Of a stretch of 64,000 nucleotides of DNA, positions 3,310 through 22,376 are shown in pieces. How positions within the stretch are numbered: the first letter of the stretch is position 1; every line of letters begins with the position of its first letter. Location: the sequence record KJ019095.1; one strand, written 5' to 3'. Below the pieces are notes generated by a model that saw nothing but the letters and a program-made list of their open reading frames with translations, ran no database searches and had not been told where the DNA came from. The translations under genes were made by a program, and so were the position numbers.

Positions 3310-3840
3310 ATGAGTGAGTATATCAAACACTATAGGGGAGTTCTAACAGATACATCTTGTGATGTTCTGATAGATGCTCTTCTGAGTGTAGATAGAAAGC
3401 ATATAAAGGAACATCGAACAGATCGTAAAACATTTGATCAGGTGTTTCTTAATGCTGCAAATATGGATCTGATTCCAGGTATTACTAAAATAGTTGGTAA
3501 TGTAATCAAACAATACAAGATGGATGTTCCATACTTCACACAGTTCTTTCCCAAGGGACTGGAGATTGAAACACCAAAGGTCAAAGGTTACAGTCCTGGG
3601 GGACAATTCAAACCACATTGTGATGTAGATGCTACTTCCTGTCCAAGGTATCTTGCCTTTCTATTTTATCTTAATGATAATTTTACAGGTGGACAAACAG
3701 AGTTCTTACCTGGTATAATGGTGGAACCTGTGAAAGGTTCAGTGGTGGTATTTCCACCCAACTGGCAACACCCTCATTGTGGATTACCAGTGGAGACTGG
3801 TAACAAATATATTATGTCAACTTATCTAAGATACGTTTAA
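3310..3840 (+). CDS. 2OG-Fe(II) oxygenase (prolyl-4-hydroxylase-like)
   Basis: HCD...FYLNDNFTGGQTEF...HCG...KY facial triad pattern. Confidence 0.9.
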   Translation: MSEYIKHYRGVLTDTSCDVLIDALLSVDRKHIKEHRTDRKTFDQVFLNAANMDLIPGITKIVGNVIKQYKMDVPYFTQFFPKGLEIETPKVKGYSPGGQFKPHCDVDATSCPRYLAFLFYLNDNFTGGQTEFLPGIMVEPVKGSVVVFPPNWQHPHCGLPVETGNKYIMSTYLRYV

Positions 3841-5210
3841 TGGATCGAATTGAGAATTTAATACTAAGATCACTCTCACATAGTGAAGGGTTTTCTAGGA
3901 AGGTTATCCCCTTCATCAAACCAGATTATTTCCATGATAATGCTGAGAAAGTTCTCTTCGAAGAAATTGCACAATACATTGTCAAGTACAACTCCAATGT
4001 TACTGTACAGGCTCTAAGTATTGAGGTGGAACAGAGAACCGATTTATCTGATAGTGATGTCAAAACTATCAGAACCATCCTAGATGACTTTGATGCAGTC
4101 ACAGGAACTGATGAGTGGATGATTGATTCCACTGAGAAGTGGTGTAAGAAACAAGCAATCTACAACGCTCTTATGGAGTCTGTGAGTATTGCTAATGGAG
4201 ATAGTCAGACTAAGGCTGAAGACGCTATTCCTAGTATCCTCTCAGAGGCTCTGGGTGTATCCTTTGATAGTAATGTAGGTCACGACTATATCGAGAATGC
4301 AGAGGATAGGTGGGAGTACTATCACCAGAAGGAAGATAAGATTCCCTTCGATATTGATCTACTCAATGCAATTACTAAAGGTGGATTACCTAACAAGACA
4401 CTGAATATCGCACTCGCTGGTACTGGTGTCGGTAAGTCACTCTTTATGTGTCACGTAGCAGCCTCTAGTTTAATGCAGGGTAAGAATGTTCTATACATCA
4501 CTGCTGAGATGGCAGAAGAGAAGATCGCGGAACGTATTGACTCCAACCTACTCAACGTTAATATCAAGGATCTATCTGAACTACCCAAACAGATGTTTGA
4601 GAAGAAGATAGATGCGGTATCTAAGAAGACACAAGGTTCCTTGGTTATCAAGGAGTATCCTACAGCTTCTGCACACTCAGGTCACTTCAAGTCTCTACTT
4701 AACGAACTAAAACTCAAGAAGAACTTCACACCAGATATTATCTTTATTGATTATCTCAATATCTGTGCTTCCTCTCGTATCAGAGCTGGTGCTAACGCTA
4801 ACTCCTACACACTAGTGAAGAGTATCGCAGAAGAGATTCGTGGTCTAGCGGTAGAGTTCAACGTTCCTATCGTGAGTGCTACTCAGACGACCCGTAGTGG
4901 GTATGGAAACAGTGACGTGGGTATCACAGATACCTCTGAGTCTTTCGGTCTTCCTGCAACCGCTGACCTTATGATTGCTCTCATCTCCACTGAGGAGTTG
5001 GAGGGACTGAATCAGATTATGGTTAAACAACTTAAGAATAGATACAATGATCCCACTCTCCATAAGCGTTTTGTTGTTGGTATTGATAGAGCTAAGATGC
5101 GGTTGTATGACTGTGAGCAGGCAGCTCAGGATGATATTCTGGATTCTGGTGATACAGAAACCCAGGAAGGTTCTTCTCTGAAGGATAAGTTGGCAAAACT
5201 GAGTTTCTAG
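3840..5210 (+). CDS. gp41: replicative helicase gp41 (DnaB-like)
   Basis: AGTGVGKS, EMAEE, IDYLNI, SATQTTR, KQLKNRY. Confidence 0.97.
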   Translation: MDRIENLILRSLSHSEGFSRKVIPFIKPDYFHDNAEKVLFEEIAQYIVKYNSNVTVQALSIEVEQRTDLSDSDVKTIRTILDDFDAVTGTDEWMIDSTEKWCKKQAIYNALMESVSIANGDSQTKAEDAIPSILSEALGVSFDSNVGHDYIENAEDRWEYYHQKEDKIPFDIDLLNAITKGGLPNKTLNIALAGTGVGKSLFMCHVAASSLMQGKNVLYITAEMAEEKIAERIDSNLLNVNIKDLSELPKQMFEKKIDAVSKKTQGSLVIKEYPTASAHSGHFKSLLNELKLKKNFTPDIIFIDYLNICASSRIRAGANANSYTLVKSIAEEIRGLAVEFNVPIVSATQTTRSGYGNSDVGITDTSESFGLPATADLMIALISTEELEGLNQIMVKQLKNRYNDPTLHKRFVVGIDRAKMRLYDCEQAAQDDILDSGDTETQEGSSLKDKLAKLSF

Positions 5211-5218
5211 TGTATAAT
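5190..5218 (+). promoter_or_regulatory. sigma70-type promoter upstream of mazG
   Basis: TTGGCA-17 bp-TATAAT. Confidence 0.75.
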
Positions 5219-5268
5219 AGTTATGTTGGGAAGAAACCCCAACCTCCTTTGTGATGTGGTGTTTGTTG

Positions 5269-5296
5269 GGGAAGGGGTGGTTCCCTTCCCTTTTTT
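5269..5296 (+). terminator. intrinsic terminator in the mazG leader
   Basis: GGGAAGGG/CCCTTCCC stem followed by T6. Confidence 0.75.
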
Positions 5297-5320
5297 ATTG
5301 TTTATTGGTATTCAATTATT

Positions 5321-5725
5321 ATGAGCGTAGATTTTTCTAAGTACGGTGAGTTTGTAGACACAGTAACTAGTGCCCCCTCCAAGGGAACTGGTGAGATGAT
5401 CGCAGTACTCAAGGACCTTAAGCTTCGTGGAGCACAACCCGAAAGACTTCTTACTGGTGCAGTTGGTATCTGTGCTGAGGGTGGTGAGTTCATGGAAGTG
5501 GTCAAGAAGATGGTATTCCAAGGCAAACCCTATGACCAAGATAATGTCTGGCATATGAAGCGTGAGTTGGGTGATATTATGTTCTATGTACAAACAGCNT
5601 GTATCGCTCTAGGTACCTCTGTTGATGAGATTGTAGAGATGAATGTNGAGAAACTAGAAGCACGATATCCAGGTGGTCAATTTAGTGTAGAGAATAGTGA
5701 GAACCGAGTAGAGGGTGACTTATGA
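5321..5725 (+). CDS. mazG: MazG nucleotide pyrophosphohydrolase
   Basis: GICAEGGEFMEVVKK, KRELGDIMFY, EKLEARYP. Confidence 0.93.
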   Translation: MSVDFSKYGEFVDTVTSAPSKGTGEMIAVLKDLKLRGAQPERLLTGAVGICAEGGEFMEVVKKMVFQGKPYDQDNVWHMKRELGDIMFYVQTXCIALGTSVDEIVEMNXEKLEARYPGGQFSVENSENRVEGDL

Positions 5726-5844
5726 TTGCATCTGATACACATAATGAACCCACTGAGTTAATCAGACAAATCAATGATTCAGTGGAACGTGCTAGAATGA
5801 AGGAACAAGACGATCAACTAAACTACGACACAGGAGGTAAATGA
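5722..5844 (+). CDS. 40-aa hypothetical protein
   Basis: Manual translation; ATGA overlaps with both neighbours. Confidence 0.55.
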   Translation: MIASDTHNEPTELIRQINDSVERARMKEQDDQLNYDTGGK

Positions 5845-6149
5845 TGGACAAACCAATTACAGTTGAGGAATACCAAGAGGCTGGTAAAGAGTTCTGGCCA
5901 AAGTATTGGTATGTTGCTAAAGAACTTGGTGAAAACGCTAAGACTGAAGATGTCCTACATGTTATGGAGTCTCTTGCTGGTGTTGTTATGGTCAACAGAA
6001 GCAATGAAAAGAAAGAATACTCTGGTATGATTGGGTTCAATAAGTCCCTAGAAGACAACCCATTGGCTTCTGCTACATACCACGGACAACCAGTTACAGA
6101 GTGTCCCCCAGGGACTATCTACTGTAACGGTGAATGTTGTGATCTATGA
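5841..6149 (+). CDS. conserved cyanophage-type hypothetical protein
   Basis: ORF track; GGAGGT SD. Confidence 0.8.
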   Translation: MMDKPITVEEYQEAGKEFWPKYWYVAKELGENAKTEDVLHVMESLAGVVMVNRSNEKKEYSGMIGFNKSLEDNPLASATYHGQPVTECPPGTIYCNGECCDL

Positions 6150-6157
6150 GGTAAATT

Positions 6158-6292
6158 ATGGCTAAAAGAACCTATACTACAAAGTCTGGAGATGTGTTTG
6201 AGTGGGAAGAGACCCCTGAAACTACTGCAGCACTCAAAGCTCTCCACAGACAAGTGGCAGAGACAAAACAGAAGCTTGACAGCACCAAGTGA
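6158..6292 (+). CDS. 44-aa hypothetical protein
   Basis: Manual translation MAKRTYTTKSGDVFEWEE...; GAGGT SD. Confidence 0.65.
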   Translation: MAKRTYTTKSGDVFEWEETPETTAALKALHRQVAETKQKLDSTK

Positions 6293-6304
6293 GTCTGTTA
6301 TAAT
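6276..6304 (+). promoter_or_regulatory. consensus sigma70 promoter of the tRNA/ncRNA cassette
   Basis: TTGACA-17 bp-TATAAT with extended -10 TG. Confidence 0.9.
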
Positions 6305-6310
6305 ATGAGA

Positions 6311-6380
6311 GTTGGGAAGGAAACCCCCCAACTGCGGTGACCCCCTTGGTAGTTCAGGGTTAGCGGCGATAGGAACTACC
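6311..6380 (+). ncRNA. candidate structured RNA (5' hairpin plus H-type pseudoknot)
   Basis: GTTGGG/CCCAAC hairpin; TGACCC/GGGTTA crossing GGTAGTTC/GAACTACC. Confidence 0.5.
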
Positions 6381-6384
6381 ACAA

Positions 6385-6458
6385 GGGTTAATAGCTCAGC
6401 TGGACAGAGCAACGCTCTTCTAAAGCGTCGGTCGTTGGTTCGAATCCAACTTAACCCG
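6385..6458 (+). tRNA. tRNA-Arg(TCT)
   Basis: Acceptor stem GGGTTAA/TTAACCC, anticodon arm ACGCT-CTTCTAA-AGCGT, GGTTCGAATCC; CCA not encoded. Confidence 0.95.
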
Positions 6459-6480
6459 TTGGGGTCTAATTAACCCCATA

Positions 6481-6665
6481 GGATGTGACAGAATGAACCG
6501 TTTGGTTAATACCGGTCATTGTATAGTAGGGAAGGCTGTGGTGGCCGCCAGAAAGACTAGGAGACTAGAGTTCTGAGAACCCATACCAGGGTCCCGAAAG
6601 TTCAGAGGTATTACTATTCTTAGTATGACCCCTCTGTTGGAGGTAAAAAGATAATCCTCCCATCC
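6481..6665 (+). ncRNA. large structured RNA, probably manA RNA motif
   Basis: Closed by GGATG/CATCC with internal CAGAGG/CCTCTG and GGAGG/CCTCC stems; lies between tRNAs as recalled for cyanophage manA RNAs; family assignment from memory. Confidence 0.6.
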
Positions 6666-6671
6666 ACCCAA

Positions 6672-6743
6672 TCCACAATAGCTCAGCGGTAGAGTCGGCG
6701 ACTGTTAATCGCCTTGTCCCTGGTTCGAATCCAGGTTGTGGAG
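6672..6743 (+). tRNA. tRNA-Asn(GTT)
   Basis: Acceptor stem TCCACAA/TTGTGGA, anticodon arm GGCGA-CTGTTAA-TCGCC. Confidence 0.95.
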
Positions 6744-6761
6744 TTCTTTATTATCTTTGAT

Positions 6762-7478
6762 ATGGATGTATCCAATCCTGATAACTGGTATATTGGTAGA
6801 TTTTGTGAATCTAACTTCCTAGATCAAACAGCACTCTCCTCAGTGAGGTCATGGATTGATACTCAATCATGGGTAGATGGAGTTTTAACTTTGGACTACT
6901 CTAAAGATAAGGATCCATATCAACTGAAAAGAAATCAGGCAACGAGAAATATAATCCCACCCAGACTATTTTGGCCACATGTTGATAAGAACGAAAAGTT
7001 CGCTCGGTTCACCTGTCCCCGATCAAGTACCGATCCAAACTGCACAAAAACATCTAAGGGTGAATACTACAAACCACACTTTGATGATGTAGTTAATGGG
7101 CACTTCTCAACTACGATCTTTATCAGTGATCCTGATGAATATGATGGTGGTGAGTTAGTTCTGTATATTGACGGGAAGGAAGTATTCTTCAAACCAAAAG
7201 CAGGTGAAGGTGTAACTTATGAGACTGGTATTGGTCATAGAGTCAATACAGTCACAAGGGGTGAGAGATTGGCATTTGTATTCTGGACAGATTGTCGATG
7301 GGATGATATTGATGATTATCGTGATTGGCGTTATTATAACTATATGAAAGACTACCTAATGACAACTCCTTATGTTGATACCTTATATGAGTTTTGTAAC
7401 GAACCCCATACTATATTCAAAGGGAAATCATATGATATTATGAGAAAGGTTATGAGGAAAGTTATTCCTAATGGTTGA
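6762..7478 (+). CDS. PKHD-type 2OG-Fe(II) hydroxylase
   Basis: YKPHFD, YDGGELVL, HRVNTVTRGER; start moved to the ATG after the tRNA. Confidence 0.88.
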   Translation: MDVSNPDNWYIGRFCESNFLDQTALSSVRSWIDTQSWVDGVLTLDYSKDKDPYQLKRNQATRNIIPPRLFWPHVDKNEKFARFTCPRSSTDPNCTKTSKGEYYKPHFDDVVNGHFSTTIFISDPDEYDGGELVLYIDGKEVFFKPKAGEGVTYETGIGHRVNTVTRGERLAFVFWTDCRWDDIDDYRDWRYYNYMKDYLMTTPYVDTLYEFCNEPHTIFKGKSYDIMRKVMRKVIPNG

Positions 7479-8004
7479 ATCATTTTACGGAGAAATACTC
7501 AACTCCGATGCTACTGGGCATCTGTATTCGTATGCCCAAAGTATTCAAGACTGGCAAACCATAAAGCAAGACTATATGGGTAAGAACTATCAGTCTGTTA
7601 TGGCTCATAAAGTTCCAAAGGGAAATGAAATTGAGAAGTATGTTGTTAGAACTTTCCTCACATTCAATAAGTTATATTTCAATTACGATCTAGTAGGAAC
7701 ATTTGAAACACAGATTCTAAAGTATAATGTTCATGATGGATATGATTGGCATTGTGACTATGGTGTGAGTGAGAATCCCAATGCGATAAGAAAACTGAGT
7801 ATGATTATTCAACTCAGTGATATGTGGGACTACAACGGTGCAAATGTATTCCTAAGGGACTGGCACAACCGAGAACACATCCTAAGTAAGGAATCTGGGT
7901 ATGTTACCGTATTCGACTCTAGGTCCCCTCACAGGGTCTCTCCCCTAGCTATCGGAGAACGATACTCACTGGTAGCCTGGGCTCACGGTCCAGAGTGGAG
8001 ATAA
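7471..8004 (+). CDS. 2OG-Fe(II) oxygenase
   Basis: YDWHCD, RKLSMIIQLSD, HRVSPL...RYSLVAW. Confidence 0.9.
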   Translation: MVESFYGEILNSDATGHLYSYAQSIQDWQTIKQDYMGKNYQSVMAHKVPKGNEIEKYVVRTFLTFNKLYFNYDLVGTFETQILKYNVHDGYDWHCDYGVSENPNAIRKLSMIIQLSDMWDYNGANVFLRDWHNREHILSKESGYVTVFDSRSPHRVSPLAIGERYSLVAWAHGPEWR

Positions 8005-8029
8005 ATAAAATACAAAGAAATGGAAACAT

Positions 8030-8344
8030 ATGCTTTCTACACAATATCGTCTTCGCCTTGAGGCTATCTGCCAAAAGATTGCGAATAGTGAATCTGTGGA
8101 TTTGAGTGACATGATCTGGGCAGACAAACTGGCAAAGAGTCATACTACCGCTAGAGACTGGTTGCAGCAGGCAAGAAGACAATCCGCCCATCAAATTGAA
8201 GAAGGTACCATAGATGATTTTATGAATCGGATGAATTTAGGGAACCCTGATCCATCCGATCATAAAACTGGGTTCGATAGTGCCGATGACATCAAAGATT
8301 GGTTTCGGCAAGATAAGTCCAAAGACTGGAGACAAAGAGACTAA
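8030..8344 (+). CDS. conserved cyanophage hypothetical protein
   Basis: ORF track; GATAAATA late-like promoter at 8000. Confidence 0.8.
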   Translation: MLSTQYRLRLEAICQKIANSESVDLSDMIWADKLAKSHTTARDWLQQARRQSAHQIEEGTIDDFMNRMNLGNPDPSDHKTGFDSADDIKDWFRQDKSKDWRQRD

Positions 8345-8346
8345 CT

Positions 8347-8526
8347 ATGGCTAATAAAAACGACAAAGGCAATCACCCAAGAGAAGAGGGTTGGTTCACC
8401 GAAAAGTTGAAGAGAAGACTCAGGAATGATCTCATACATCCTGAACATCTAGTTCCCATCCTTATTGAAGAGAATGAGGCACTTAGAGCAGAGATTGCAA
8501 CACTAAAAGCAATGCATAAATGGTAA
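8347..8526 (+). CDS. 59-aa hypothetical protein
   Basis: Manual translation MANKNDKGNHPREEGW...; fills the gap between neighbours. Confidence 0.6.
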   Translation: MANKNDKGNHPREEGWFTEKLKRRLRNDLIHPEHLVPILIEENEALRAEIATLKAMHKW

Positions 8527-8527
8527 A

Positions 8528-9829
8528 ATGGCAGCATTAAGTTCCACTTCCCCAGGACAACTAGGTAAGTATGTCATCCCCACAGTCCAGAAACTAAATG
8601 ATGCGATGAAACGCAGAACTAGTCTTGGTAGGGGGAGTGGTAAGTCTTATACCATTAAGAATACCCCTGCGAATGTGGCAGCTATCAAGGAGTTCTCTCG
8701 TATTGGTAGCTCCCCCAAGTCACAGAAAGAAGCACTTGCTATTAGTCTACAGACCACTGATACTAAAGTTCCTACTATTACTATCGGCAGTATTGATAAA
8801 CCTAATATCAAATACAACCTTGGAGATATGTCTGAGGCTGTAGTTGGTGCTGCTATTGCTGCCAGGTTTATCTACAAGAATAGAAGTATTACGACTTCAA
8901 ATGTTTATGGTGTTCTATATGGAATGCCACCATCATCTAACTACCCAGGGAAGAAGGGAAAATATACAGAGAAGACATTCCAGTCAGTTAATGAAAATAA
9001 GAAGGTTACAGATCAAGTTAAGGTGTATATCTCCTTAGCTGAGGTTAATATGGCTGCTGTGATGGATAGATCCAATAAGGATCTTATTCTTCCTTATGTT
9101 CGTTCTGCAGTCAGATATGCCAATAGTACTACTGTTAAGAAGTGGTCCAAACTACTTTATGAGAACAATAGATCAGATAAGATTGATGTAATGTCCGATG
9201 GTCTTGGAGGACAAACCACAACTAAAGTGGATGTATATGTAAAAGTTAATGATGAGAAAGTAAATATTAATGTGTCACTGAAGGCTGGTGATGTCAAACA
9301 GTTTGGTCAGGTCTCTGGTATTGAGTTTGAGAAACAAACTAAACTATGGGAAACCTCCTTTGGTTTTGGTAGTGAGATTAAGAGTCTAGAGTCAAAGTAT
9401 AACCAGTTGATCTCAGATAAATCAACAGTCCCACAGGCTGTAACTATGGTGTATCAAGAGGTGGCTAACCTTTTTAATCAAGGTATTAAGAGAGGTGATG
9501 CTGGTATGATAAGGAAATTTGCCAACTCCATTAAGTATTTTGCTACACTAAATGAAGACAATGTAACCCTACTACAGGTGGGTAATGATGCAGCAAAGCT
9601 CTATTCGTTTGATGATATATACCAAGGAATAGAAAACATGCAACTGAACGCTTCTATTACTATGGGTAAGAGTGGTCTCCCAACCTTACTAATAAACGAG
9701 ACTGCTAGTGGGCAACCTCTTATTCAGTATCGAGTGAAGCAGGAGTTCAAACCCGATGGGTCTCCATACATCAGAAACTATGTGGAGAAGCAGACTGTTC
9801 TAGGAAAACTTATTGGTGAAAACCTCTAG
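8528..9829 (+). CDS. hypothetical protein, possible PD-(D/E)xK-like nuclease
   Basis: Helix GDMSEAVVG and KVDVYV-x9-VSLK pattern; upstream of a Dam-like gene. Confidence 0.55.
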   Translation: MAALSSTSPGQLGKYVIPTVQKLNDAMKRRTSLGRGSGKSYTIKNTPANVAAIKEFSRIGSSPKSQKEALAISLQTTDTKVPTITIGSIDKPNIKYNLGDMSEAVVGAAIAARFIYKNRSITTSNVYGVLYGMPPSSNYPGKKGKYTEKTFQSVNENKKVTDQVKVYISLAEVNMAAVMDRSNKDLILPYVRSAVRYANSTTVKKWSKLLYENNRSDKIDVMSDGLGGQTTTKVDVYVKVNDEKVNINVSLKAGDVKQFGQVSGIEFEKQTKLWETSFGFGSEIKSLESKYNQLISDKSTVPQAVTMVYQEVANLFNQGIKRGDAGMIRKFANSIKYFATLNEDNVTLLQVGNDAAKLYSFDDIYQGIENMQLNASITMGKSGLPTLLINETASGQPLIQYRVKQEFKPDGSPYIRNYVEKQTVLGKLIGENL

Positions 9830-9864
9830 GTGTGTTATAATACCATTGTAGAGATTTCTATTTT

Positions 9865-10764
9865 ATGAAGGAACGCAGAAAGTATCCAACCGTATTGAGG
9901 TATCCAGGCGGTAAGTCTAGGATTATCTACTATTTGTTTAGGGAAAATATGATCCCTAAGAATGTCAAGGAATACCGTGAGGGTTTCCTAGGTGGGGGTT
10001 CTTGTGCTCTTGCGTTCTCTGTGATGTACCCAAACACCCCAGTTTGGGTCAATGATCTTTACTACAATCTGTATATCTTCTGGACACAACTCCAGAAGAA
10101 TCCAGATCCACTCATCAATCGTCTCCTAGAACTAAAGGACGAAGCCTGTGATGCATCGGGTACAGAAGAACTAGAGAAAAAGCATAGAAAACTCTACACA
10201 GATATGCGTGATCTCATTAATACTTCTAGTGATCACCTTGATATTGCAACCTCCTTCTACATTCTAAACCGATCTAGTTTCGGTGGATTCACTGAACAAA
10301 ACAAGAATGCCTTCATCCGAGACTCATACAAGAATACTATTTTCTCTCAGAGTAAAATCCGTAAGTTGGCTAATATCTCTGAGATTATCCAACCCTGGAG
10401 AATTACCAATACACACTACAAGGAACTAATGAGAGCTCCTGGTGATGATGTATTTGTGTTCCTAGACCCTCCATATCTAATCAAGGATATGTTGTATGGT
10501 AAGGACAAGGAGATGCACACTGGGTTCTCTCATGAAGAGTTTGTGAGTGAGTGTAAAGGTTCTACACATGACTGGATGATTACCTACAATGAACATGAAT
10601 GGTTGAGATCCCAGTTCGCTGACTATCATATGGAGTCTTTCGAGTTCCGTTATAGTCTCGCCCACAGGGAAGAGAATGGCAACAAGAAAGAAGAACTCCT
10701 CATAATGAACTATGAGATTCCTCGTGATATCCCAAACCCACTAGAGGTAGTTTTGTATGGATGA
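9865..10764 (+). CDS. Dam-like (D12 class) DNA adenine methyltransferase
   Basis: YPGGKS, FLGGGS, DPPY. Confidence 0.93.
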   Translation: MKERRKYPTVLRYPGGKSRIIYYLFRENMIPKNVKEYREGFLGGGSCALAFSVMYPNTPVWVNDLYYNLYIFWTQLQKNPDPLINRLLELKDEACDASGTEELEKKHRKLYTDMRDLINTSSDHLDIATSFYILNRSSFGGFTEQNKNAFIRDSYKNTIFSQSKIRKLANISEIIQPWRITNTHYKELMRAPGDDVFVFLDPPYLIKDMLYGKDKEMHTGFSHEEFVSECKGSTHDWMITYNEHEWLRSQFADYHMESFEFRYSLAHREENGNKKEELLIMNYEIPRDIPNPLEVVLYG

Positions 10765-11212
10765 TCTAGAGCTAGAGTATCATCTTTATCTGGATGGAAA
10801 CCCTATTCAGACACTGAAGGATGACGCTAGTACAATGACTTTAGCCAAGAAGAGAGTTATCGGTCCTTACATTCGTAGAGCTGAATCTTTTATTAAAATA
10901 TCAGAACCATTTAGGGAACTACTTCGTCTTGATGATGGTAAGGATAAACTTCTAGATGCAATAGGTGTTGTCTGGGCACACTACTTTGAACATAAGATTA
11001 ACAAGAAGTATATGGTTATCCCTAAGGATGCATCTCTTGATTTTATGGAATACTTTGGTACTATGGCACAGAAGGATAAGTTTCCAGATGATAAATATAT
11101 TAAGAAAGCTCAGCGTATCATTCTCTCTCACGAAAAGAGTATTGATGCTTTCATTAAGGCTTTTCATAGTATCCGTTTAGCCAACGACAAATATCTCTCC
11201 CTGAAGAAATGA
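10757..11212 (+). CDS. hypothetical protein
   Basis: ORF track; overlaps both neighbours. Confidence 0.75.
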   Translation: MDDLELEYHLYLDGNPIQTLKDDASTMTLAKKRVIGPYIRRAESFIKISEPFRELLRLDDGKDKLLDAIGVVWAHYFEHKINKKYMVIPKDASLDFMEYFGTMAQKDKFPDDKYIKKAQRIILSHEKSIDAFIKAFHSIRLANDKYLSLKK

Positions 11213-13887
11213 TCACACCGAAGTCCCTACTATCATTCCTATCTGAAGCCGCTGATTCTGAGGCTGCACAACAGGCTAAGGAGATGGGTTTAACCTCTGC
11301 CGGTTATGGTAACTGGAGAGACAGGTCGGGCAATGTTGTTGCCAAAACTGTAGATGGTCAGTTGGTGATGATTGACGCCAAGGCAGACCCTATGGCTAGA
11401 CCGGCGGCACCTGAGGAGGAAATGCCACCTGAAGAGGAGGAGGAGCCCCAGTTTGTAGAACCAGATCCAGATATGGTTGAGAAAGTAGCTAAGGGTCTTT
11501 CTGGTGGTAGATATAATATTGCATCAGCACAGAGGAAGAAAGAGTTACTGGCTTCTGCTAGACAGATACTAATCAATAAACAGATCCAAGACGCTCAGAT
11601 GCAGGCTGACGCTGAGGCTCAGGCAGCGGCACAGAACCCACCAGAACCCACTCCAGAGGAGTTGGCACAACAACAGGCGGATATGGAACTACAGCAACAG
11701 AACGCTGTGATGGATACTGAACTGAAGGCACAGAGTGTAGAGAATGGGAAACTGGACCTTCAGATGAAGAAGGACCAGATGAAGCAACAGAAGGAGGCAG
11801 AGAAAGAAGCCAAGGCTATGGATAAACTAGCCAAGAAAGCAGAGGCACAGAAACAAGCAGAAGCAGAAGCCGCAGCTCCTCCACCAATGCCACAGGGTGT
11901 CGCCCCCGATGCACCACCACTTCCTGAAGAAGAGATGGTTGTACCTGATGAACTGGATGCCCTGCTTGGAGCTATTAGGGGTGGTAATGAGAAGAAGACT
12001 AGTTCTGTTCTAGGTAAAATTCAGAAGAAAATTGGTAAGAAATCTGCTCCAAAGGCAAAAGCAAAACCCAAAAAGACACCTAAAGTTCAGACAGATCGAA
12101 GAATACCTGTTGCGGCTGTCGATAGAACAGATGTCCCGCAGTTTCAATCTGAAGCCCTAAGTCAGATGAATGCATATCTATCCGAAAATAGACAGAGAGA
12201 GGAGGATGATTACTATAGGGGTGCAGCAATTGAGGCTGTGCGTGAGCAACACGGTGAGGCTTTCTATTACTTTGATGAACCAAATGGTGTTGTAACAGAA
12301 ATCAACACCCCACAGGGTGCTGCTGACCTAATGGAGTGGTCAACTAATAGCTCTAACAAACTAATTGGTAAGTCCCTGAAACCTTTTTGGAAAGAAGTTG
12401 ATAACTTCCATAACAACTGGGCAGATCCTGAACTCCGTGACGAGAATAACTACGAACAAATCATCGAAGTTACTCGCCCAAACCGAGGAAAGATACCTGA
12501 TTCTGTAGTAGATTCTGAATGGAAGAAACTAAAGAATGCAGAGAGGAAGCAACTAGCTGAAATGGGTCTAGGTGGTGCTGGTGGTCGTGCTAATATGTTT
12601 CTAAAGACCGATAAGGATAGGGAGAAGAGGGGTAAATCTATCCTTAAGGTGTATCTAGAACAGGGCGGTCGAGATGCCTGGTTGGGTTCTTCTGACACTA
12701 ACCCTATTAGTTGGAAGGATATGACTGTCGATCATGTTCATTCTGAGGGTGATGTTCAGTTCTGGCAAGCCGAATGTGTCAAGAGGGGTATGGATCCTAA
12801 GGATTATCAGGCTTTGGCTAATGATCCAGAAGTTAACTATGTTATGACTCGTTTTGGATTCAATGGAGCTCAGAAGAGGGACAACTCCATGGATAAACTA
12901 TACACTGAAATGGAGAAGAAGTATTACTCTAAAGGTAAGAATGAAGTTGATAGTCTTACTAGAGGTAATGCTGAGAAGAAGATGAGGAAGCAACTTAGGG
13001 AACAAGAATATTATGCTCCCCTAGTTCAGAATCTTAAGGCGGCAGTTCAGTCTGGCAATTTTACCCCAGAAGTTTATAATGAACTATTTGATACTTATAA
13101 GAAAGGTAGGTCTGAACTTGAGACATCTAACGGTCCTAGAACTGATCGTTCTCAGATGATTATGGGACGTAATGAATCTACCGATCCTTGGAGATCTCTT
13201 GCTGAAAGATCACTATTTGGTTATAAGATCTTTGCTGGTGATGGTCTCCGTGCCAAGAAAGGTGGTCAGATTGCTGGTTGGTCTGGTGTCGGTGGAACTA
13301 CCAGTGGTTCTAATGCGGCTGATGGTGAAGCTCCTTCATATCCCTTCGAGGATACTGCTATGGACTTCTACTTCGATCCTATTCGGAGAATGGCACTATC
13401 CAGTCCAGAGAATCAAAAAAAGGCAGATTCTATCCACAAATACACTCAGTTTATGGGTAACGCCTTTGTTACTGGTAAGATTGGATCTCAAGAATGGCAC
13501 AACTATCTAACCCAGTCTTCACAGATGATGCATGAGATGCTTCCTGATGAGTGGAAAGGTGAGTATGAGGCGGAACGGGGACAGGAATACCTATCAACAA
13601 TTAATAGAACTCTAAACAAACTCAATAAGGGTCAGGATGATCTTGAGGGTGATAATTATGCGCCCGATCGTAATATCACTGAACTTTTTAAGAACTCACC
13701 ACAGAAGAGTTTAGCTGATCAGGGTATTGAAATTATGAGATCTATGATGGATCCAGAGAACTTCAATGCGGTTGACTACTATGATCGTGGTAATCTTTAT
13801 GAAGGTTTCGAAAATCTTGGGTTGTTATCTGGTAGAGGTGATGTTATAATGGAGAGGTTCCAAAATAAGAGAAGGAATGAAATTTGA
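11209..13887 (+). CDS. 892-aa multidomain protein with HNH nuclease motif
   Basis: YLEQGGRD...TVDHV...NYVMTR...NGAQK; N-terminal module shared with the cytidyltransferase; Pro/Glu/Gln linker. Confidence 0.8.
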   Translation: MITPKSLLSFLSEAADSEAAQQAKEMGLTSAGYGNWRDRSGNVVAKTVDGQLVMIDAKADPMARPAAPEEEMPPEEEEEPQFVEPDPDMVEKVAKGLSGGRYNIASAQRKKELLASARQILINKQIQDAQMQADAEAQAAAQNPPEPTPEELAQQQADMELQQQNAVMDTELKAQSVENGKLDLQMKKDQMKQQKEAEKEAKAMDKLAKKAEAQKQAEAEAAAPPPMPQGVAPDAPPLPEEEMVVPDELDALLGAIRGGNEKKTSSVLGKIQKKIGKKSAPKAKAKPKKTPKVQTDRRIPVAAVDRTDVPQFQSEALSQMNAYLSENRQREEDDYYRGAAIEAVREQHGEAFYYFDEPNGVVTEINTPQGAADLMEWSTNSSNKLIGKSLKPFWKEVDNFHNNWADPELRDENNYEQIIEVTRPNRGKIPDSVVDSEWKKLKNAERKQLAEMGLGGAGGRANMFLKTDKDREKRGKSILKVYLEQGGRDAWLGSSDTNPISWKDMTVDHVHSEGDVQFWQAECVKRGMDPKDYQALANDPEVNYVMTRFGFNGAQKRDNSMDKLYTEMEKKYYSKGKNEVDSLTRGNAEKKMRKQLREQEYYAPLVQNLKAAVQSGNFTPEVYNELFDTYKKGRSELETSNGPRTDRSQMIMGRNESTDPWRSLAERSLFGYKIFAGDGLRAKKGGQIAGWSGVGGTTSGSNAADGEAPSYPFEDTAMDFYFDPIRRMALSSPENQKKADSIHKYTQFMGNAFVTGKIGSQEWHNYLTQSSQMMHEMLPDEWKGEYEAERGQEYLSTINRTLNKLNKGQDDLEGDNYAPDRNITELFKNSPQKSLADQGIEIMRSMMDPENFNAVDYYDRGNLYEGFENLGLLSGRGDVIMERFQNKRRNEI

Positions 13888-14782
13888 TGTTGTTATTGGC
13901 AACCCCCCATATCAGAATCCTGATGGTGTAAAGAACAAGAAGATCTGGTTATCTTTCTTTGATCTTGGTGTCTCCCTCCTAAAGAAGGGTGGCACTATGT
14001 GTTACATCACGCCCACCACTCACTTCTGGAGTTTGGGTAGAAAGTGGCAAACTGGTGTGTCTGCTGATATTCTACTGAAACAGAACAACCTTCGTAGTGT
14101 AGATTTCACTACATCCAAACACTTCCCACAGGTTGGTGACTATATTTGTAACTATGTTCTACGCAAAGAACCTCCCAGTGGTATGGTAGATGTTATTGAG
14201 AAAGATGGGACAGAGGTTCTACGCCCACATGATGATGTCTATGATTGTGATGAGGAGAGACAAAAGGCAAAGTTCTTCTCTGCTATGAGAGAACTACGAG
14301 AGAAGTATGGGAAGTATCATATTCCCCACGACACAAGAGATAAGAGTCATTATAGTCAGACACAGGAGGGCGTGTATCAGCATCCTACTTATATTTCGGC
14401 AGCAAAACAGATATGGTATGCTGACAGTCCTACACTAGGGACTGATACACTGAAGATTATTATGAATATGTCTTCCTACTTCTGGAATATCAATGATACT
14501 CAGAAGTATATGAGGATTGATTCAGGTCCTGGTGTTGGGTTATTGGGAAGAATGTTGGCAATTGATAGTGTGGAGGATGGTGAGAAGATAGTTGAGTACC
14601 TAACTTCACCACTAGTGAAGTTCTACATTGACTGTATGAAGAGGACATCCCCATGGAACCACGCGATGTATCAGTTACCAAAGTGTCACCATATGACAGA
14701 GAGTGAGATCCTAGATGAGATGGGTTGGACTAGAGACCAGTTTGAAGAAATGTATCCAGAACGTCTGGAAACCAAAGTATAG
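13877..14782 (+). CDS. Eco57I-like N6-adenine methyltransferase catalytic/TRD fragment
   Basis: Starts with FDVVIGNPPY (motif IV); no motif I seen. Confidence 0.8.
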   Translation: MKFDVVIGNPPYQNPDGVKNKKIWLSFFDLGVSLLKKGGTMCYITPTTHFWSLGRKWQTGVSADILLKQNNLRSVDFTTSKHFPQVGDYICNYVLRKEPPSGMVDVIEKDGTEVLRPHDDVYDCDEERQKAKFFSAMRELREKYGKYHIPHDTRDKSHYSQTQEGVYQHPTYISAAKQIWYADSPTLGTDTLKIIMNMSSYFWNINDTQKYMRIDSGPGVGLLGRMLAIDSVEDGEKIVEYLTSPLVKFYIDCMKRTSPWNHAMYQLPKCHHMTESEILDEMGWTRDQFEEMYPERLETKV

Positions 14783-14811
14783 TTGACAAGGGACCCCAGG
14801 TGTGTTATACT
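14783..14811 (+). promoter_or_regulatory. sigma70-type promoter
   Basis: TTGACA-17 bp-TATACT with extended -10. Confidence 0.85.
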
Positions 14812-14836: not shown

Positions 14837-15718
14837 ATGGTGAAACCCCTGTTTAAGTGGACTGGTGGAAAGGGGCGACTATTCCAGAAGTATCAAGATC
14901 TAAACTTCTTCCCAGAGGCAGACAGGTTCGACACATTTGTTGACCTGTTTTTTGGTGCTGGGTCAGTCACCCTTTGGGTTGCGGAGAAGTATCCAGATAA
15001 GAAACTCATTATTAATGATAAGAACACGGAACTTATGGGGTTATATACCCAAATACGTGATAACTGGGGTGAGTTTAGTGAGCACTATAAGAGAGTGTAT
15101 AACGTATTCCTAGACACCCCAATAGAGAAAAGAAAGGCACTCTATAACTGTTATAAGAAGAGATATGCATGGAACTATAAGTGGTTGTCAGAAGCAGAGA
15201 TTGCGGCAAACCTCTTGGTTATGATGAAGATTAACTTCAATGGTATTTGGTTAGCGTATAAGATGTATGGTCGTAGGTATTCTACGGCACCAGGGAAGAT
15301 TGATTATAAAGAAAGTATCTTTGGTATGGAGAATGTGGAACAGTTCCGTCAAGTCCTACTACGGGCAACACTCTACAATAGATCCTTTGAGGATGTTCCT
15401 ATTCCTGATAACTCCTGGGTATTTGCTGATCCACCATACAGAGACACCAGAGATATGTATTCCGATACATTCACCGATGAACTTCAGTCTAAACTGGCAA
15501 AGTTCATAGTTTCTACAGACGGACTATACTGTGAGTCTAATAAAGAAACTGGTGATGGTTTCTGGGGAGAACACTTCCCTATGGAGAACATCCACTTCAC
15601 AGATCACAAATACACTTGTGGTTATGGGGGATCCATTAACCCAGTCACTGAAGTTCTTATAAAGAACTATGGGAATAATATCCCACAACCAACTACCCTT
15701 GATTCCTTTTTTAACTGA
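14837..15718 (+). CDS. Dam-like DNA adenine methyltransferase
   Basis: FKWTGGK, FFGAGS, DPPY. Confidence 0.92.
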   Translation: MVKPLFKWTGGKGRLFQKYQDLNFFPEADRFDTFVDLFFGAGSVTLWVAEKYPDKKLIINDKNTELMGLYTQIRDNWGEFSEHYKRVYNVFLDTPIEKRKALYNCYKKRYAWNYKWLSEAEIAANLLVMMKINFNGIWLAYKMYGRRYSTAPGKIDYKESIFGMENVEQFRQVLLRATLYNRSFEDVPIPDNSWVFADPPYRDTRDMYSDTFTDELQSKLAKFIVSTDGLYCESNKETGDGFWGEHFPMENIHFTDHKYTCGYGGSINPVTEVLIKNYGNNIPQPTTLDSFFN

Positions 15719-15720
15719 TT

Positions 15721-16413
15721 ATGCAAAAGAAAAACCGTATCTCCCACGAAGAAGAAATTAAACTATGTCGTCAGGCACAACTACAAGATCATACATCCAA
15801 GTATGCTATGACTAAAATGGTTAGTGCTAATATTGGGTTGGTTGAGAAACTCGCTAACAAACTCTACATCAAGAATGATCAATACTCTTTCGATGATCTA
15901 TACCAGGAGGGTGTATTTGGTCTTATCAGAGGTGTGAATAAGTTTGATCCTAGTGTTGGGTGTAGGTTTTCCACATATTCATACTACTGGATCTATAGTT
16001 ATATCATGAGGTATTGTGAGAATAACCTAGGTAAGATCCGTATTCCCACTCACCTCCGTGAGAAGATGAGGAAACAGAAAGATAATAAGGTAGAGTTGGA
16101 CAGACTAAAGTCCAAAGTCCCGTCAGTAGTATCATTAAATACAATAGTGGGTGAATCACTATCCTTGGATAATGTAGTTACATACACCGAGAATATCTCA
16201 TTTGATGATGAGATGGAACATGTTTTGGTTGTTATGGATGAGGTTTTGGATGAAAGAGAACACCAGGTTCTCTGTAGTAGGTTTGGTATTGGTGGCGAGA
16301 AGCCACTATCCCAGAGAGAGTGTGCTAAACTACACAATGTTACCCATGGTGCTATCTATTTGATTGAGAAGAAATCAATCAAGAAAATCAAACACCATAT
16401 GGGTTATAAATAA
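15721..16413 (+). CDS. sigma70-family RNA polymerase sigma factor (regions 2-4)
   Basis: DLYQEGVFGLIRGVNKFDP, FSTYSYYWI, IRIPTH, region 4 HTH. Confidence 0.93.
   Translation: MQKKNRISHEEEIKLCRQAQLQDHTSKYAMTKMVSANIGLVEKLANKLYIKNDQYSFDDLYQEGVFGLIRGVNKFDPSVGCRFSTYSYYWIYSYIMRYCENNLGKIRIPTHLREKMRKQKDNKVELDRLKSKVPSVVSLNTIVGESLSLDNVVTYTENISFDDEMEHVLVVMDEVLDEREHQVLCSRFGIGGEKPLSQRECAKLHNVTHGAIYLIEKKSIKKIKHHMGYK
16405..16412 (+). promoter_or_regulatory. T4-type late promoter
   Basis: TATAAATA 18 bp before the cytidyltransferase ATG. Confidence 0.8.
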
Positions 16414-16429: not shown

Positions 16430-17644
16430 ATGGCGATGAGATCGTTTCTAACATTCCTAACCGAAGCCCGTTCTCGTGCATCTAAAAGAGCCAAAGAGTT
16501 GGGACTCACTGGCAATGGTCACGGTGGATGGGAAGATAACGAAGGTAACCTAGTCGCCATGACGGTGAAGGGTGATCTGGAGTTTGTGAAGGGAAGAGAA
16601 CCCAAAGAGGAAGAAGAACCCGATGAAAAGACTTCTGCCCCTGAAGAGGAACCAACATCCAACAAAGCGCCTGGGGTAGATCCAGAGAACACAGATACTC
16701 CAAGACAGAAAGAACCAGCGCCTGTTCCCAAAGATAAGGGTATTCTAACTGTTGCTTTCGGTAGGTTTAACCCTCCTACGATTGGACATGAGAAACTAAT
16801 CAATACTGTAGCATCATATTCAGAGAACGGTGATTACATAATCATTCCCTCTAGGAGTGAGGATAAGAAGAAGAACCCTTTAGATATCGACACTAAAGTT
16901 AGTATCATGAGGCAGATGTATCCAACACACGCCGAGAAGATTGTTAACGATCCACATAATAGAACCATCTTTGATGTTATGCGTAAGGCGCATAATGATG
17001 GTTACGCTGGTATTAGGATTGTTGGTGGTGGAGATAGAGTTAAGGAATATGAGAAGTTAGCCAACGCATATAACGGATCTACCTATCAGTTTGATGAAAT
17101 TGATGTAGTAAACGCTGGTGACAGGGATCCAGATGCGGAAGGTGCGGAAGGTATGTCTGCCTCCAAGATGAGAAAGGCGGCAGCTGATAACGACTTTGCT
17201 TCTTTCAGAAAGGGAATGCCAAAGACTCTCAGTAACGACCAGATGGTTTCTATCTACACTCAGGTTCAGAAGTCTATGGGTGTAACACCTAAGGAAGCTG
17301 TAATTGAAAACTGGAAAGTTGCTCCTAGACTGTATCCACAGGAACTGAGAGAGGCTTATATCCAAAACGAAATCTATAATATTGGTGATACTGTCAGTCA
17401 TGACACCACTGGTATGGTAGGTAAGATCGTAAGAAAGGGAACCAATCACCTCATTTGTGTAACAGAAAGTGAGGAAATGTTCAAGACCTGGACACAGGAT
17501 GTTAGTCCCGCAGATCTAAAACCACAACCAGCAATCTCTACTCCAAAGGAGAGGGAAGTTGGAACAGATTCCCTTAGATCTTTCCTTCAGAGGATCACTC
17601 CAGGAGAGAAAGAGCAATCCTTTATAAATAAACATAAGAAATAA
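16430..17644 (+). CDS. cytidyltransferase-family protein
   Basis: FGRFNPPTIGH (HxGH), SASKMR; start set after the late promoter. Confidence 0.9.
   Translation: MAMRSFLTFLTEARSRASKRAKELGLTGNGHGGWEDNEGNLVAMTVKGDLEFVKGREPKEEEEPDEKTSAPEEEPTSNKAPGVDPENTDTPRQKEPAPVPKDKGILTVAFGRFNPPTIGHEKLINTVASYSENGDYIIIPSRSEDKKKNPLDIDTKVSIMRQMYPTHAEKIVNDPHNRTIFDVMRKAHNDGYAGIRIVGGGDRVKEYEKLANAYNGSTYQFDEIDVVNAGDRDPDAEGAEGMSASKMRKAAADNDFASFRKGMPKTLSNDQMVSIYTQVQKSMGVTPKEAVIENWKVAPRLYPQELREAYIQNEIYNIGDTVSHDTTGMVGKIVRKGTNHLICVTESEEMFKTWTQDVSPADLKPQPAISTPKEREVGTDSLRSFLQRITPGEKEQSFINKHKK
17623..17630 (+). promoter_or_regulatory. T4-type late promoter
   Basis: TATAAATA. Confidence 0.75.
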
Positions 17645-19572: not shown

Positions 19573-19580
19573 TATAAATA
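19573..19580 (+). promoter_or_regulatory. T4-type late promoter
   Basis: TATAAATA. Confidence 0.8.
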
Positions 19581-21395: not shown

Positions 21396-22376
21396 ATGGA
21401 TTTTGTTGATTCCAAGTTCATAAGTCTAGTATCCTCTCGCTTAGAGAAGTTCAAACAGAAGAAGTCTGACCTGTATAACTGCAGGTGTCCCATTTGTGGA
21501 GACTCTTCTAGGAACCGAACTAAAGCGAGGGGATATATTTATGCAGTGAAACAAAATACAAACTACAAATGCCACAACTGTGGTGTGAGTATGTCATTCT
21601 CTAACTTCCTGAAGGAGATAGATCCAGTATTACATAAGCAATATGTCTTTGAGAAGTTCAAGGGAAAGAACTCTACGCCCATCAAGAACGTTAAGTCAGT
21701 TCTGGATAAGTTTTCCTACGAACCCAAGTTCAAGAAGAAGACAAAGATTGATTTGCCCTCCGCCTTTGATGTAAAACTATCTAAGGAGTATCTGGATAAC
21801 AGAAAGATTACCTCTGGGGAGTTTTATTACACAGATAACTTCAAAGAGTTTGTGAATGTAATCAAACCAAGAACGTTTGATGACGAACGTGGGGGACCTA
21901 GAATTGTAATTCCCCTGTATGACAGGGATGGTGTATTGTTTGGGTTACAGGGAAGATCTCTTCTCCCCAGTAAGGTTAAATACATCACAATCATCCTTGA
22001 TGAAGACCAACCAAAAGTGTATGGTTTGGAGAAAATAGACCCCACACAGAGGGTTTATCTAGTGGAAGGTCCTTTCGATTCCACATTCATAAATAACTCA
22101 CTCGCTATGTGTGGTGCTGATGTAGTATTAGATACACTGGGACTACAAGAACTAGTATATGTGTACGATAACGAACCTCGTAACAGGGAGATCTGCAATA
22201 GGATCAATAAAGTTATCGATCAGGGTAAGAAGGTTGTTATTTTCCCCACAAATATAGAACAAAAGGACATCAATGATATGATCTTAGCAGGGCATGATAT
22301 AATGACTGTATTGGGATCCAATGTCTACCAAGGACTAACTGCTAAAATTAAGTATAACGAATGGAAAAGATTATGA
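21396..22376 (+). CDS. gp61: DNA primase gp61
   Basis: CPICGD...CHNC zinc finger; TOPRIM VEGPFDS, DNE, KDIND. Confidence 0.96.
   Translation: MDFVDSKFISLVSSRLEKFKQKKSDLYNCRCPICGDSSRNRTKARGYIYAVKQNTNYKCHNCGVSMSFSNFLKEIDPVLHKQYVFEKFKGKNSTPIKNVKSVLDKFSYEPKFKKKTKIDLPSAFDVKLSKEYLDNRKITSGEFYYTDNFKEFVNVIKPRTFDDERGGPRIVIPLYDRDGVLFGLQGRSLLPSKVKYITIILDEDQPKVYGLEKIDPTQRVYLVEGPFDSTFINNSLAMCGADVVLDTLGLQELVYVYDNEPRNREICNRINKVIDQGKKVVIFPTNIEQKDINDMILAGHDIMTVLGSNVYQGLTAKIKYNEWKRL

Follow-up and report, generated by a model that had tools for sequence, protein, structure and literature searches.

What is the function of a gene that stands, under the name of a cytidyltransferase, among the DNA methyltransferase genes of a marine cyanophage? 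The gene, gp190 (YP_009134401), lies in the 64,000-nucleotide stretch of sequence record KJ019095.1 that we analyzed (hereafter the window), which over the gene is 100 % identical to Synechococcus phage ACG-2014f, a T4-like cyanomyovirus (Kyanoviridae, Atlauavirus) of ~228 kb. It is an intact open reading frame (ORF) at 11209..13887 on the plus strand, with an ATG start and 892 amino acids (aa); an earlier reading of this DNA, made from the letters alone (the sequence-only reading), had placed an 892-aa ORF exactly there, and the protein proved 100 % identical to ACG-2014f gp190. The gene sits in the replication and nucleotide-metabolism region, with gp41 helicase on one side and gp61 primase on the other. 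The answer we put forward, to which as a whole we give an even chance, is that gp190 is a nuclease of the internal-protein kind, injected with the phage DNA, and that the phage protects itself from it by methylation.

The product name of gp190 in GenBank and RefSeq is 'cytitidyltransferase' (misspelt), and this name is attached to the nuclease gene in the records of two of its alleles, A and B (n=24). The name is explained by a true cytidyltransferase encoded nearby, whose N-terminus that of gp190 resembles:

16430..17644, plus strand: gp194, true cytidyltransferase (NMNAT-like; Pfam CTP_transf_like), with the same N-terminal tag and module as gp190

The N-terminal match to the cytidyltransferase that the sequence-only reading had noticed is real (BLASTP, 38 % identity to gp194, residues 5-103, E 9e-15). 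The similarity stops at ~residue 100, the catalytic domain of gp194 occupies residues 131-228, and a Pfam scan found no CTP_transf_like (HxGH nucleotidyltransferase) domain in gp190. Judged from these comparisons, the annotation of gp190 as a cytidyltransferase is an error, one that has spread to ~20 deposited genomes and is corrected here.

The enzyme that gp190 does appear to contain is an HNH nuclease domain of the cysteine-free Cas9/HNH_4 type. We consider this very likely because invariant residues, a profile match to SpCas9, a linking relative (P0016) and signals from Pfam, a structural model and the ESM Atlas all combine. The features concerned are:

12529..12933, plus strand: HNH (His-Me finger) nuclease domain, Cas9/HNH_4 type, residues 441-575, with the loop GLGGAGGR, then RGKSILKVYLEQGGRD, and a helical insertion in the beta-hairpin
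12730..12735, plus strand: D508-H509, predicted metal ligand and general base; H invariant, D/E nearly invariant
12835..12864, plus strand: N543 to N552 (NYVMTRFGFN), the two Asn of the H-N-N motif, both invariant and aligned to SpCas9 NKVLTRSDKN

The strings from which a Cas9-type motif with D-H, N and N positions had first been proposed lie at residues 482-489 (YLEQGGRD), 506-509 (TVDH), 543-548 (NYVMTR) and 552-559 (NGAQKRDN). The proposal was borne out, in that the motif is invariant in the family and the SpCas9 HNH domain is the top match in the PDB. An alignment of 11 family members, with identity down to 24 %, had invariant columns at G453, Q485, D489, H509, N543, R548, G550 and N552, and the D/E-H pair recurs in gp190 alleles B, C and D, in S-CREM2 gp12 and in S-CRM01 gp51. 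Searched against 177,635 PDB sequences, the family profile gave the isolated SpCas9 HNH domain (6o56_A) as its top match (E 0.018), aligned motif to motif: YLEQGGRDAY...DH with YLQNGRDMY...DH, and NxVLTRxGxN with NKVLTRSDKN. In the family-profile alignment the SpCas9 counterparts of D508-H509 are D839-H840.

The family is very small (6 clusters in 5.8 billion proteins; a profile search of 1.84 billion gave 13 representatives). P0016, which matched the family profile at E 1.2e-6 (1.84 billion proteins), has canonical HNH spacing without the hairpin insertion. On its own it matched in the PDB the HNH domains of a group II intron maturase (E 4.1e-4) and of SpCas9 (E 4.4e-4). Cas9 accounted for nearly all of the 54 PDB matches listed for it; a homologue search started from it gave one additional relative only. 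In gp190, 34 residues separate the DH pair from the first Asn versus 14 in SpCas9; the insertion is helical and 20-35 residues long. Relatives of gp190 had sub-threshold Pfam matches to HNH (0.0036), HNH_4 (0.03) and GmrSD_C (6.5e-4). An AlphaFold2 (AF2) model of residues 425-600 (predicted local distance difference test score, pLDDT, 77) consisted of a strand at 505-509, three inserted helices, a strand at 544-548 and a helix at 551-557, with the beta-beta-alpha core at pLDDT 84-93. All ESM Atlas neighbours, by features and structure, that carried a family annotation belonged to His-Me finger families (template modelling score, TM, 0.40-0.49). By itself the gp190 sequence was less telling: it falls in PHROGs into the unnamed family phrog_3561 only, and a single-sequence phmmer search against the PDB returned low-complexity noise only.

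The resemblance to Cas9 does not extend beyond this domain. Neither RuvC motifs nor an array of clustered regularly interspaced short palindromic repeats (CRISPR) had been seen in the sequence-only reading, and this was upheld: gp190 had no Pfam match, and the window holds no repeat array. Pfam and NCBIfam gave no match outside the HNH-like stretch to RuvC, the REC lobe or the protospacer adjacent motif-interacting domain, the PDB match was confined to HNH, and no CRISPR-related Rfam family was found in the 64-kb window. Descent of gp190 from Cas9, or another CRISPR origin, was ruled out, as the HNH domain alone matches and there is no array. Like the HNH domains of Cas9 and of group II intron maturases, gp190 has the Q-x-G-R-D ... 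D-H ... N ... N series without zinc-binding cysteines; unlike Cas9, it has the helical insertion and is without RuvC, REC lobe, guide RNA and CRISPR array.

Three further regions connect or follow the nuclease domain and the N-terminus:

11383..12108, plus strand: low-complexity linker, residues 59-300, defined by composition
12109..12528, plus strand: pre-nuclease region, mostly helical, residues 301-440, conserved in all family members
12934..13887, plus strand: C-terminal region and stop codon, residues 576-892, highly conserved in the family, with the Gly-rich stretch GGQIAGWSGVGGTTSGSNAADGE

The long linker that had been described behind the N-terminal module is thus present, as residues 59-300 are of low complexity. 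It comprises an acidic, Pro-rich segment (59-95), an Ala/Gln/Lys-rich one (96-215), a Pro/Ala/Glu-rich one (216-258) and a Lys-rich basic one with an isoelectric point of 11 (259-300), and is not conserved among gp190 relatives. Residues 301-440 had no match in the family libraries (Pfam, PHROGs, NCBIfam, PADLOC), and the C-terminal 300 residues retrieved nothing related from the Atlas (nearest cluster 0.57). The AF2 model of residues 309-892 (pLDDT 56) was too poor for a structure search. The two conserved regions, 301-440 and 576-892, may serve in DNA recognition or regulation.

How such a nuclease might reach its target is suggested by the N-terminus, which divides into two parts:

11209..11247, plus strand: putative T4-type capsid-targeting propeptide, residues 1-13 (MITPKSLLSFLSE), with a gp21 prohead-protease cut predicted after E13, between FLSE and A
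11248..11382, plus strand: conserved module common to gp190 and gp194, residues 14-58 (AKEMGLTSAGYGNWRDRSGNVVAKTVDGQL)

The tag pattern is hydrophobic(-6)-x-x-F(-3)-L(-2)-x-E(0), and residues 7-13 of gp190 read L-L-S-F-L-S-E, then A. The protein begins MITPKSLLSFLSE-AADSE and gp194 begins MAMRSFLTFLTE-ARS; the gp194 tag, SFLTFLTE before A, also fits the T4 pattern. In the T4 genome, internal proteins (IP) IPII and IPIII start MKTYQEFIAE, then A. T4 genetics assigned residues 4 and 7 of IPIII to capsid targeting and residues 8 and 10 to processing (PMC9026906); the gp190 counterparts are L7, F10, L11 and E13. The pentapeptide context of the gp190 site recurs in the gp21-cleavage site of T4 gp23 (SFLTE-AEIGGDH) and in the gp23 propeptide of ACG-2014f (AFLSE-APT), and the head-assembly genes of ACG-2014f are present as gp139 (gp21), gp140 (gp22) and gp141 (gp23). 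Given the matches to T4 internal proteins and to the gp23 site, and the presence of gp21, gp22 and gp23, the gp190 N-terminus looks like a T4-type capsid-targeting sequence (CTS) with a predicted prohead-protease site. The tag may be what the sequence-only reading meant by calling this end 'capsid-protein-like'.

The 45-residue module behind the tag has the consensus GL..GYG.W.D..G..VAKTV.G.L. Cytidyltransferases carry it N-terminally in 257 cyanomyovirus records, and it is also found in the nuclease gp12 and the kinase gp14 of S-CREM2. The unit of tag plus module is not confined to cyanophages, because a 175-aa protein of Xanthomonas phage BUDD (L010:3950-4477) carries both (MSFETYLKE-SAAAEEAHKLGLSAAGYGLWRDKTGKVVKKTVDDKLV). 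Two other starts in the window bear some likeness to the tag. The gp61 primase (21591-22376) begins MSFSNFLKE, the tag pattern shifted by one residue; this resembles BUDD MSFETYLKE and is probably due to chance. The 498-aa gp195 ('gp186') begins MDFNVTEAVELIVLLAE-TE, which may be another protease-type site.

Evidence from virions concerns relatives of gp190. The virion proteome of S-CREM2 lists ORF12, an 869-aa 'CRISPR-Cas9 nuclease', with 28 peptides, its annotation deriving from HHpred at 92.4 % probability; the same proteome includes a SAM (S-adenosylmethionine) hydrolase, an APH-like kinase and a cytidylyltransferase (PMC10665884). S-CREM2 gp12, whose product name is 'CRISPR-associated endonuclease Cas9/Csn1, virion protein', is laid out as gp190 is, with an FASFMAE-AA tag, the module, an LDALLG.IR.G motif, a linker and the HNH domain, and the gp190-type nuclease region matched the types of gp12, S-CRM01 gp51, allele C and allele D with hhalign (97.8 %, E 1e-12). 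On the other hand, the HNH and C-terminal parts of gp12 are of the allele C type, <25 % identical to gp190; in the metagenomic relative P0004 the N-terminus is of the S-CREM2 type and the C-terminus of the gp190 type. The S-CREM2 paper did not analyse the targeting tag and suggested an origin from host CRISPR (PMC10665884).

When the complete S-CREM2 genome was scanned in all six frames for ORFs with the strict T4 pattern in residues 1-10, seven matches emerged, five of them at annotated gene starts (gp6, gp13, gp14, gp154 and gp175). Four of these five (gp6, gp13, gp14 and gp154) are listed in the virion proteome, versus 52/221 genes overall (hypergeometric P 0.012). Relatedly, the NMNAT of S-SCSM1 is a virion protein by mass spectrometry (PMC9602691), and this gp194 homologue begins MKSFLQFLKE-AA, followed by the module. 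From the tag motif and the virion proteomics of the homologue, we consider it likely that gp190 is itself packaged in the phage head. What had been published is the presence of a homologue in virions; the recognition of the tag, of the allele cassette and of the methylase pairing is new here. The tag gives a sequence-based reason for the recurrent 'non-structural' enzymes in cyanophage virion proteomes, and could be used to bring cargo into the heads of cyanophages, a role that the CTS plays in T4. A full-text literature search for capsid targeting in cyanophages gave a T4 review only.

Tag-bearing virion proteins of S-CREM2 are clustered at 3837-13331 (L013), namely gp6 (SAM hydrolase), gp12 (HNH), gp13 and gp14 (kinase), and between them lie genes for Dam methylase, pyrimidine-dimer glycosylase and an EcoRI-like protein. 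The stretch looks like an island of injected proteins. A further member of the virion proteome, gp15, has a loose tag only (MNFSEFNE).

Comparison of 45 ACG-2014f records showed that the targeting end of the gene is constant and the rest is not. The first ~650 nt are 86-100 % identical across the records (>=96 % in 43), the alleles being alike up to ~residue 215, and the remainder occurs in at least four types, all with the HNH motif:

Allele A: 892 aa, 19 records, the form in the window
Allele B: 953 aa, 5 records (L002)
Allele C: 980 aa (L003)
Allele D: 796 aa, 2 records (L006)
11837..11864: left cassette boundary, where isolate alleles and metagenome contigs diverge
13877/13883: right cassette boundary, at the gp191 start and at contig breaks

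On the sequences compared, the exchanged unit is residues ~215-892. Contigs from three public runs (X2, X3 and X19) end at 11837 or 11864 and have three different continuations; two continuations past 11837 read in frame like the starts of the variable parts of alleles B and D. Depth over the conserved 5' part was 13-32 in two marine metagenomes, versus 2-5 for the allele A part, a 3-10 times deeper coverage. These contig breaks and the depth difference indicate that several nuclease alleles coexist in natural populations. Coexistence of nuclease alleles in one phage species points to an arms race that can be traced in metagenomes. The internal-protein loci of T-even phages are likewise diverse, with the CTS alone conserved (PMC3012670), and resemble the gp190 locus in being hyper-variable with the targeting end kept.

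The genes around gp190 point to a possible source of self-protection. Adenine methyltransferases had been read from the sequence as flanking it, and they do: D12-class gp188 stands upstream, and Eco57I-like gp191 and D12-class gp192 downstream.

9865..10764, plus strand: gp188, D12-class N6-adenine DNA methyltransferase (Pfam PF02086, E 1e-24), first of the overlapping gp188-gp191 run
10757..11212, plus strand: gp189, 151 aa, phrog_3417, overlapping the gp188 stop and the gp190 start (ATGA)
13877..14782, plus strand: gp191, Eco57I-like N6-adenine methyltransferase, C-terminal half only, from DVVIGNPPY (Pfam Eco57I positions 73-169 of 171)
14837..15718, plus strand: gp192, second D12-class N6-adenine DNA methyltransferase (Pfam PF02086, E 2e-20)

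The reading frames from gp188 through gp189 and gp190 to gp191 overlap successively, the gp191 start overlapping the gp190 stop by 11 nt; a sigma factor gene stands after gp192, with gp194 next. The gene gp189 accompanies all four gp190 alleles and is a candidate partner, chaperone or inhibitor of gp190.

A gene-neighbourhood survey found a methyltransferase directly downstream in alleles A-D and in the metagenomic relatives P0004, P0005, P0008 and P0010. Directly after allele A comes the 301-aa Eco57I-like gene; after allele B, an N6_N4 methyltransferase and then two Eco57I-like genes; after allele C, a D12 methyltransferase; and after allele D, a 247-aa gene that resembles the 248-aa Eco57I-like gene of allele B by size and position only, followed by a 301-aa gene at the gp191 position. 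An Eco57I-like methyltransferase directly follows the nuclease gene in all four metagenomic relatives examined, and that of P0004 is 72 % identical to gp191. This conserved pairing of nuclease and methyltransferase is suggestive of a restriction-modification-like relationship.

The methyltransferase itself has an unusual form. The gp191 protein is the C-terminal half of a gamma-class N6-adenine methyltransferase, starting at motif IV (DVVIGNPPY); the S-adenosylmethionine (AdoMet)-binding half is a separate ORF of 122-147 aa with motif X (TGEVFTP) and motif I (FLDNSAGNGNF):

L017:10276-10659, L018:3385-3753, L019:71-514 and NC_026927 35896-36300 (gp051): ORFs for the N-terminal half of the methyltransferase

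The small ORF is adjacent in the metagenomic relatives and ~100 kb away in ACG-2014f (gp051, 61.5 % identical), and it has homologues in T4-like phages of Aeromonas and Klebsiella. From their motifs, gp191 and the small ORF look like one methylase split in two. There may be two alternative C-terminal halves in alleles B and D, the Pfam basis for this existing for B only. Two other candidates for the missing half were ruled out: gp189, which has no similarity to it, and the C-terminus of gp190, which is predicted to be all-helical, motifs X and I being found in the separate ORF.

The mechanism we propose would run as follows. Residues 1-13 would act as a capsid-targeting sequence that brings gp190 into the scaffolding core of the prohead, where the gp21 protease would cut after FLSE13 and remove the tag. 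What remains (the 45-residue module, a ~240-residue acidic, coiled and basic linker and a ~590-residue effector) would be kept in the head with the DNA and ejected into the cell upon infection. There the HNH domain (D508-H509, N543, N552) would cut DNA that lacks the phage adenine methylation, be it the host chromosome or foreign DNA, and the phage genome would arrive pre-methylated by the methyltransferases of the same, presumably translationally coupled, gene run. The nuclease part is a swappable cassette, with at least four alleles in one phage species. The step that we hold with most reserve is methylation-gated cutting of host DNA by gp190, which is possible and rather doubtful. More speculative still is one joint reading of all these observations, by which T4-like cyanophages and some other large myoviruses would load interchangeable enzymes (HNH nuclease, kinase, SAM hydrolase, NMNAT/cytidyltransferase) through a T4-type tag. 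In that reading gp190 would be the restriction half of a virus-borne restriction-modification system, injected together with pre-methylated DNA, would be destroying the DNA of host or rivals as early as the first seconds of infection, and would have its specificity diversified by cassette exchange, with the catalytic/recognition half of the split methylase travelling with the nuclease.

Several observations weigh against the injected, methylation-spared nuclease. As to the fold, gp190 had zero matches in the Pfam, NCBIfam and PADLOC scans, a Foldseek search of the nuclease-domain model against the PDB returned nothing below E 1 (best an HNH nuclease, E 1.2), and the best VIA-align matches were weak (Cap5 HNH, Z 4.6; retron HNH, Z 4.2; Cas9 residues 780-880, Z 2.6). 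As to packaging, the gp190 tag sits three residues farther from the N-terminus than the T4 and S-CREM2 tags, virion detection concerns homologues and tag-bearing enzymes rather than gp190, and the S-CREM2 authors cautioned that abundant non-structural proteins may co-purify with virions (PMC10665884). A nuclease stored beside the genome would also need some means of staying silent in the head. As to self-protection, the methyltransferase next to gp190 is not allele-specific, gp191 following alleles A, B and D and allele C having only the D12 methyltransferase, and neither S-CREM2 gp12 nor S-CRM01 gp51 has a methyltransferase directly downstream; in S-CREM2 an EcoRI-like gene adjoins gp12, with the Dam gene three genes further. 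As to timing, there is no canonical TATAAATA box directly upstream of gp190, and the sigma-70-like promoter before gp188 suggests early rather than late expression.

The expression signals are as follows. Exact T4-type late-promoter boxes (TATAAATA) lie at 16405-16412 (before gp194), 17623-17630 (before gp195) and 19573-19580, the first two standing 18-40 nt before their genes. Nearest to gp190 is a weak candidate:

11090..11097, plus strand: GATAAATA, possible late-promoter variant, inside gp189 and 112 nt upstream of the gp190 start

This could be chance, since ~3 ATAAATA matches are expected per 14 kb. The overlapping gp188-gp191 run is preceded by a sigma-70-like extended -10 site near 9833. 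Before gp188 (~9828-9845) and again before gp192 (14783-14811) stands a near-identical promoter-like sequence, AGGTGTGTTATA(A/C)T, which includes an extended -10, the gp192 copy having a perfect TTGACA, 17-nt spacing and TATACT. Public RNA runs contained ~5 % of the sampled words, in short contigs without direction.

Among other explanations, the one that fares best accepts packaging and ejection and gives gp190 another job: to counter host defence, for instance through cleavage of a plasmid or defence element or through competition with restriction, or to work on the phage's own genome, whether in the processing of its ends, as a pilot or by making nicks while the DNA is ejected. Counter-defence would fit with T4 internal proteins, anti-restriction factors whose bodies are diverse behind a conserved CTS (PMC3012670), with an accessory and rare gene (13 matches in 1.84 billion representatives), with the hyper-allelic state typical of defence and counter-defence loci, and with the company of S-CREM2 gp12 among other virion-delivered candidates (SAM hydrolase, kinase). 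We nevertheless think it unlikely, as the invariant catalytic residues argue for real DNA cutting over inhibitor-like binding and the constant adjacency of a methyltransferase is most simply read as self-protection.

A somewhat less probable alternative denies packaging altogether. Here gp190 would be a cytoplasmic restriction-type HNH endonuclease forming with the neighbouring, split methylases a restriction-modification module carried by the phage, for host DNA breakdown or exclusion of rival phages, its N-terminal module serving assembly or localisation. Its location between gp41 and gp61, the apparently early sigma-70-like promoter that opens the overlapping run, the missing canonical late box and the conserved adjacent methyltransferases all suit this explanation, as does a possible restriction endonuclease-like protein nearby:

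8528-9829: gp187, 433 aa, phrog_3560, just upstream of the D12 methyltransferase gp188

The ESM Atlas feature neighbours of gp187 include clusters annotated RE_HaeIII (0.93) and R-HinP1I (0.91), and as a lead only, it may be a restriction-endonuclease-like protein. A cytoplasmic enzyme is, however, hard to square with a tag that fits both the CTS of T4 and the site at which gp23 is cleaved, with the detection of S-CREM2 gp12 and other tag-bearing enzymes in virions, and with the tag being the only part constant among the alleles.

That gp190 keeps an HNH fold with little or no nuclease activity, and mainly binds DNA or serves a structural end in the head (condensation, aid to ejection), seems improbable. 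The long basic Lys-rich segment at 259-300 and the association of T4 internal proteins with DNA (PMC3012670) speak for it, as does the hazard of storing a nuclease with the genome; yet D/E-H, N and N are invariant at 24 % identity and across alleles, which would be unexpected for a dead site. A selfish homing-type HNH endonuclease, inserted in the methylase locus and thereby splitting the methyltransferase, would suit L019, where the halves lie upstream (N-terminal) and downstream (C-terminal) of the HNH gene, and T4-like phages, in which HNH homing endonucleases are common (this genome has two small ones annotated), but is highly improbable given 700-980 residues with a targeting tag and long linker versus 100-300 residues in homing enzymes, a methyltransferase equally split in L017 and L018, whose halves do not enclose the HNH gene, and in ACG-2014f, whose halves are 100 kb apart, and isolates that show allele replacement at a fixed site and no empty site.

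Other features were seen along the way. Two cis-regulatory RNAs known from cyanophages are present, a manA motif (90 bits) flanked by tRNA genes on both sides (6385-6743) and a PhotoRC-II motif upstream of psbA (48136-48231). Tandem 9-nt repeats (GGTGGTTCC, 8.6 copies, coding for Gly-Ser) occur at 60520-60598 within gp265, a very large ORF. The two small HNH homing endonucleases mentioned above are annotated elsewhere in the ACG-2014f genome.

The injected nuclease that we favor has partial counterparts in known systems. One is T4, in which IPI, IPII, IPIII and Alt begin with a short propeptide patterned like the putative one of gp190 (E at the cut, position -2 aliphatic, F at -3, position -6 aromatic or hydrophobic), and whose gp21/gp22/gp23 head machinery is also present in ACG-2014f. 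The T4 internal proteins are small (~8-20 kDa) and basic, and Alt is an ADP-ribosyltransferase; gp190 differs from them in being a 100-kDa putative cargo that has, besides the tag, the 45-residue module, the long linker and the HNH nuclease, and in that its processing and packaging are predicted. Phage P1 offers another counterpart in its Dar system of packaged anti-restriction proteins, of which DarB has methylase and helicase domains. As proposed for gp190, large enzymes are loaded in the P1 head and injected against restriction and modification conflicts; unlike gp190, the Dar proteins are different proteins with another hierarchy of head incorporation, and are not known to include an HNH nuclease.

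The closest counterpart in logic is provided by the chloroviruses, which package restriction endonucleases and not the adjacent methyltransferases, and degrade host DNA within 5 min (PMC7019647). A nuclease that travels with the genome, an unpackaged cognate methyltransferase and pre-methylated viral DNA are also the logic proposed for gp190. Chloroviruses are unlike gp190 in having eukaryotic algal hosts, small classical type II enzymes and no capsid-targeting propeptide. If gp190 is indeed an injected nuclease spared by methylation, marine cyanophages would share with chloroviruses the strategy of delivering a restriction enzyme with the genome, which would bear on the shutdown and recycling of host DNA in very abundant marine phototrophs.

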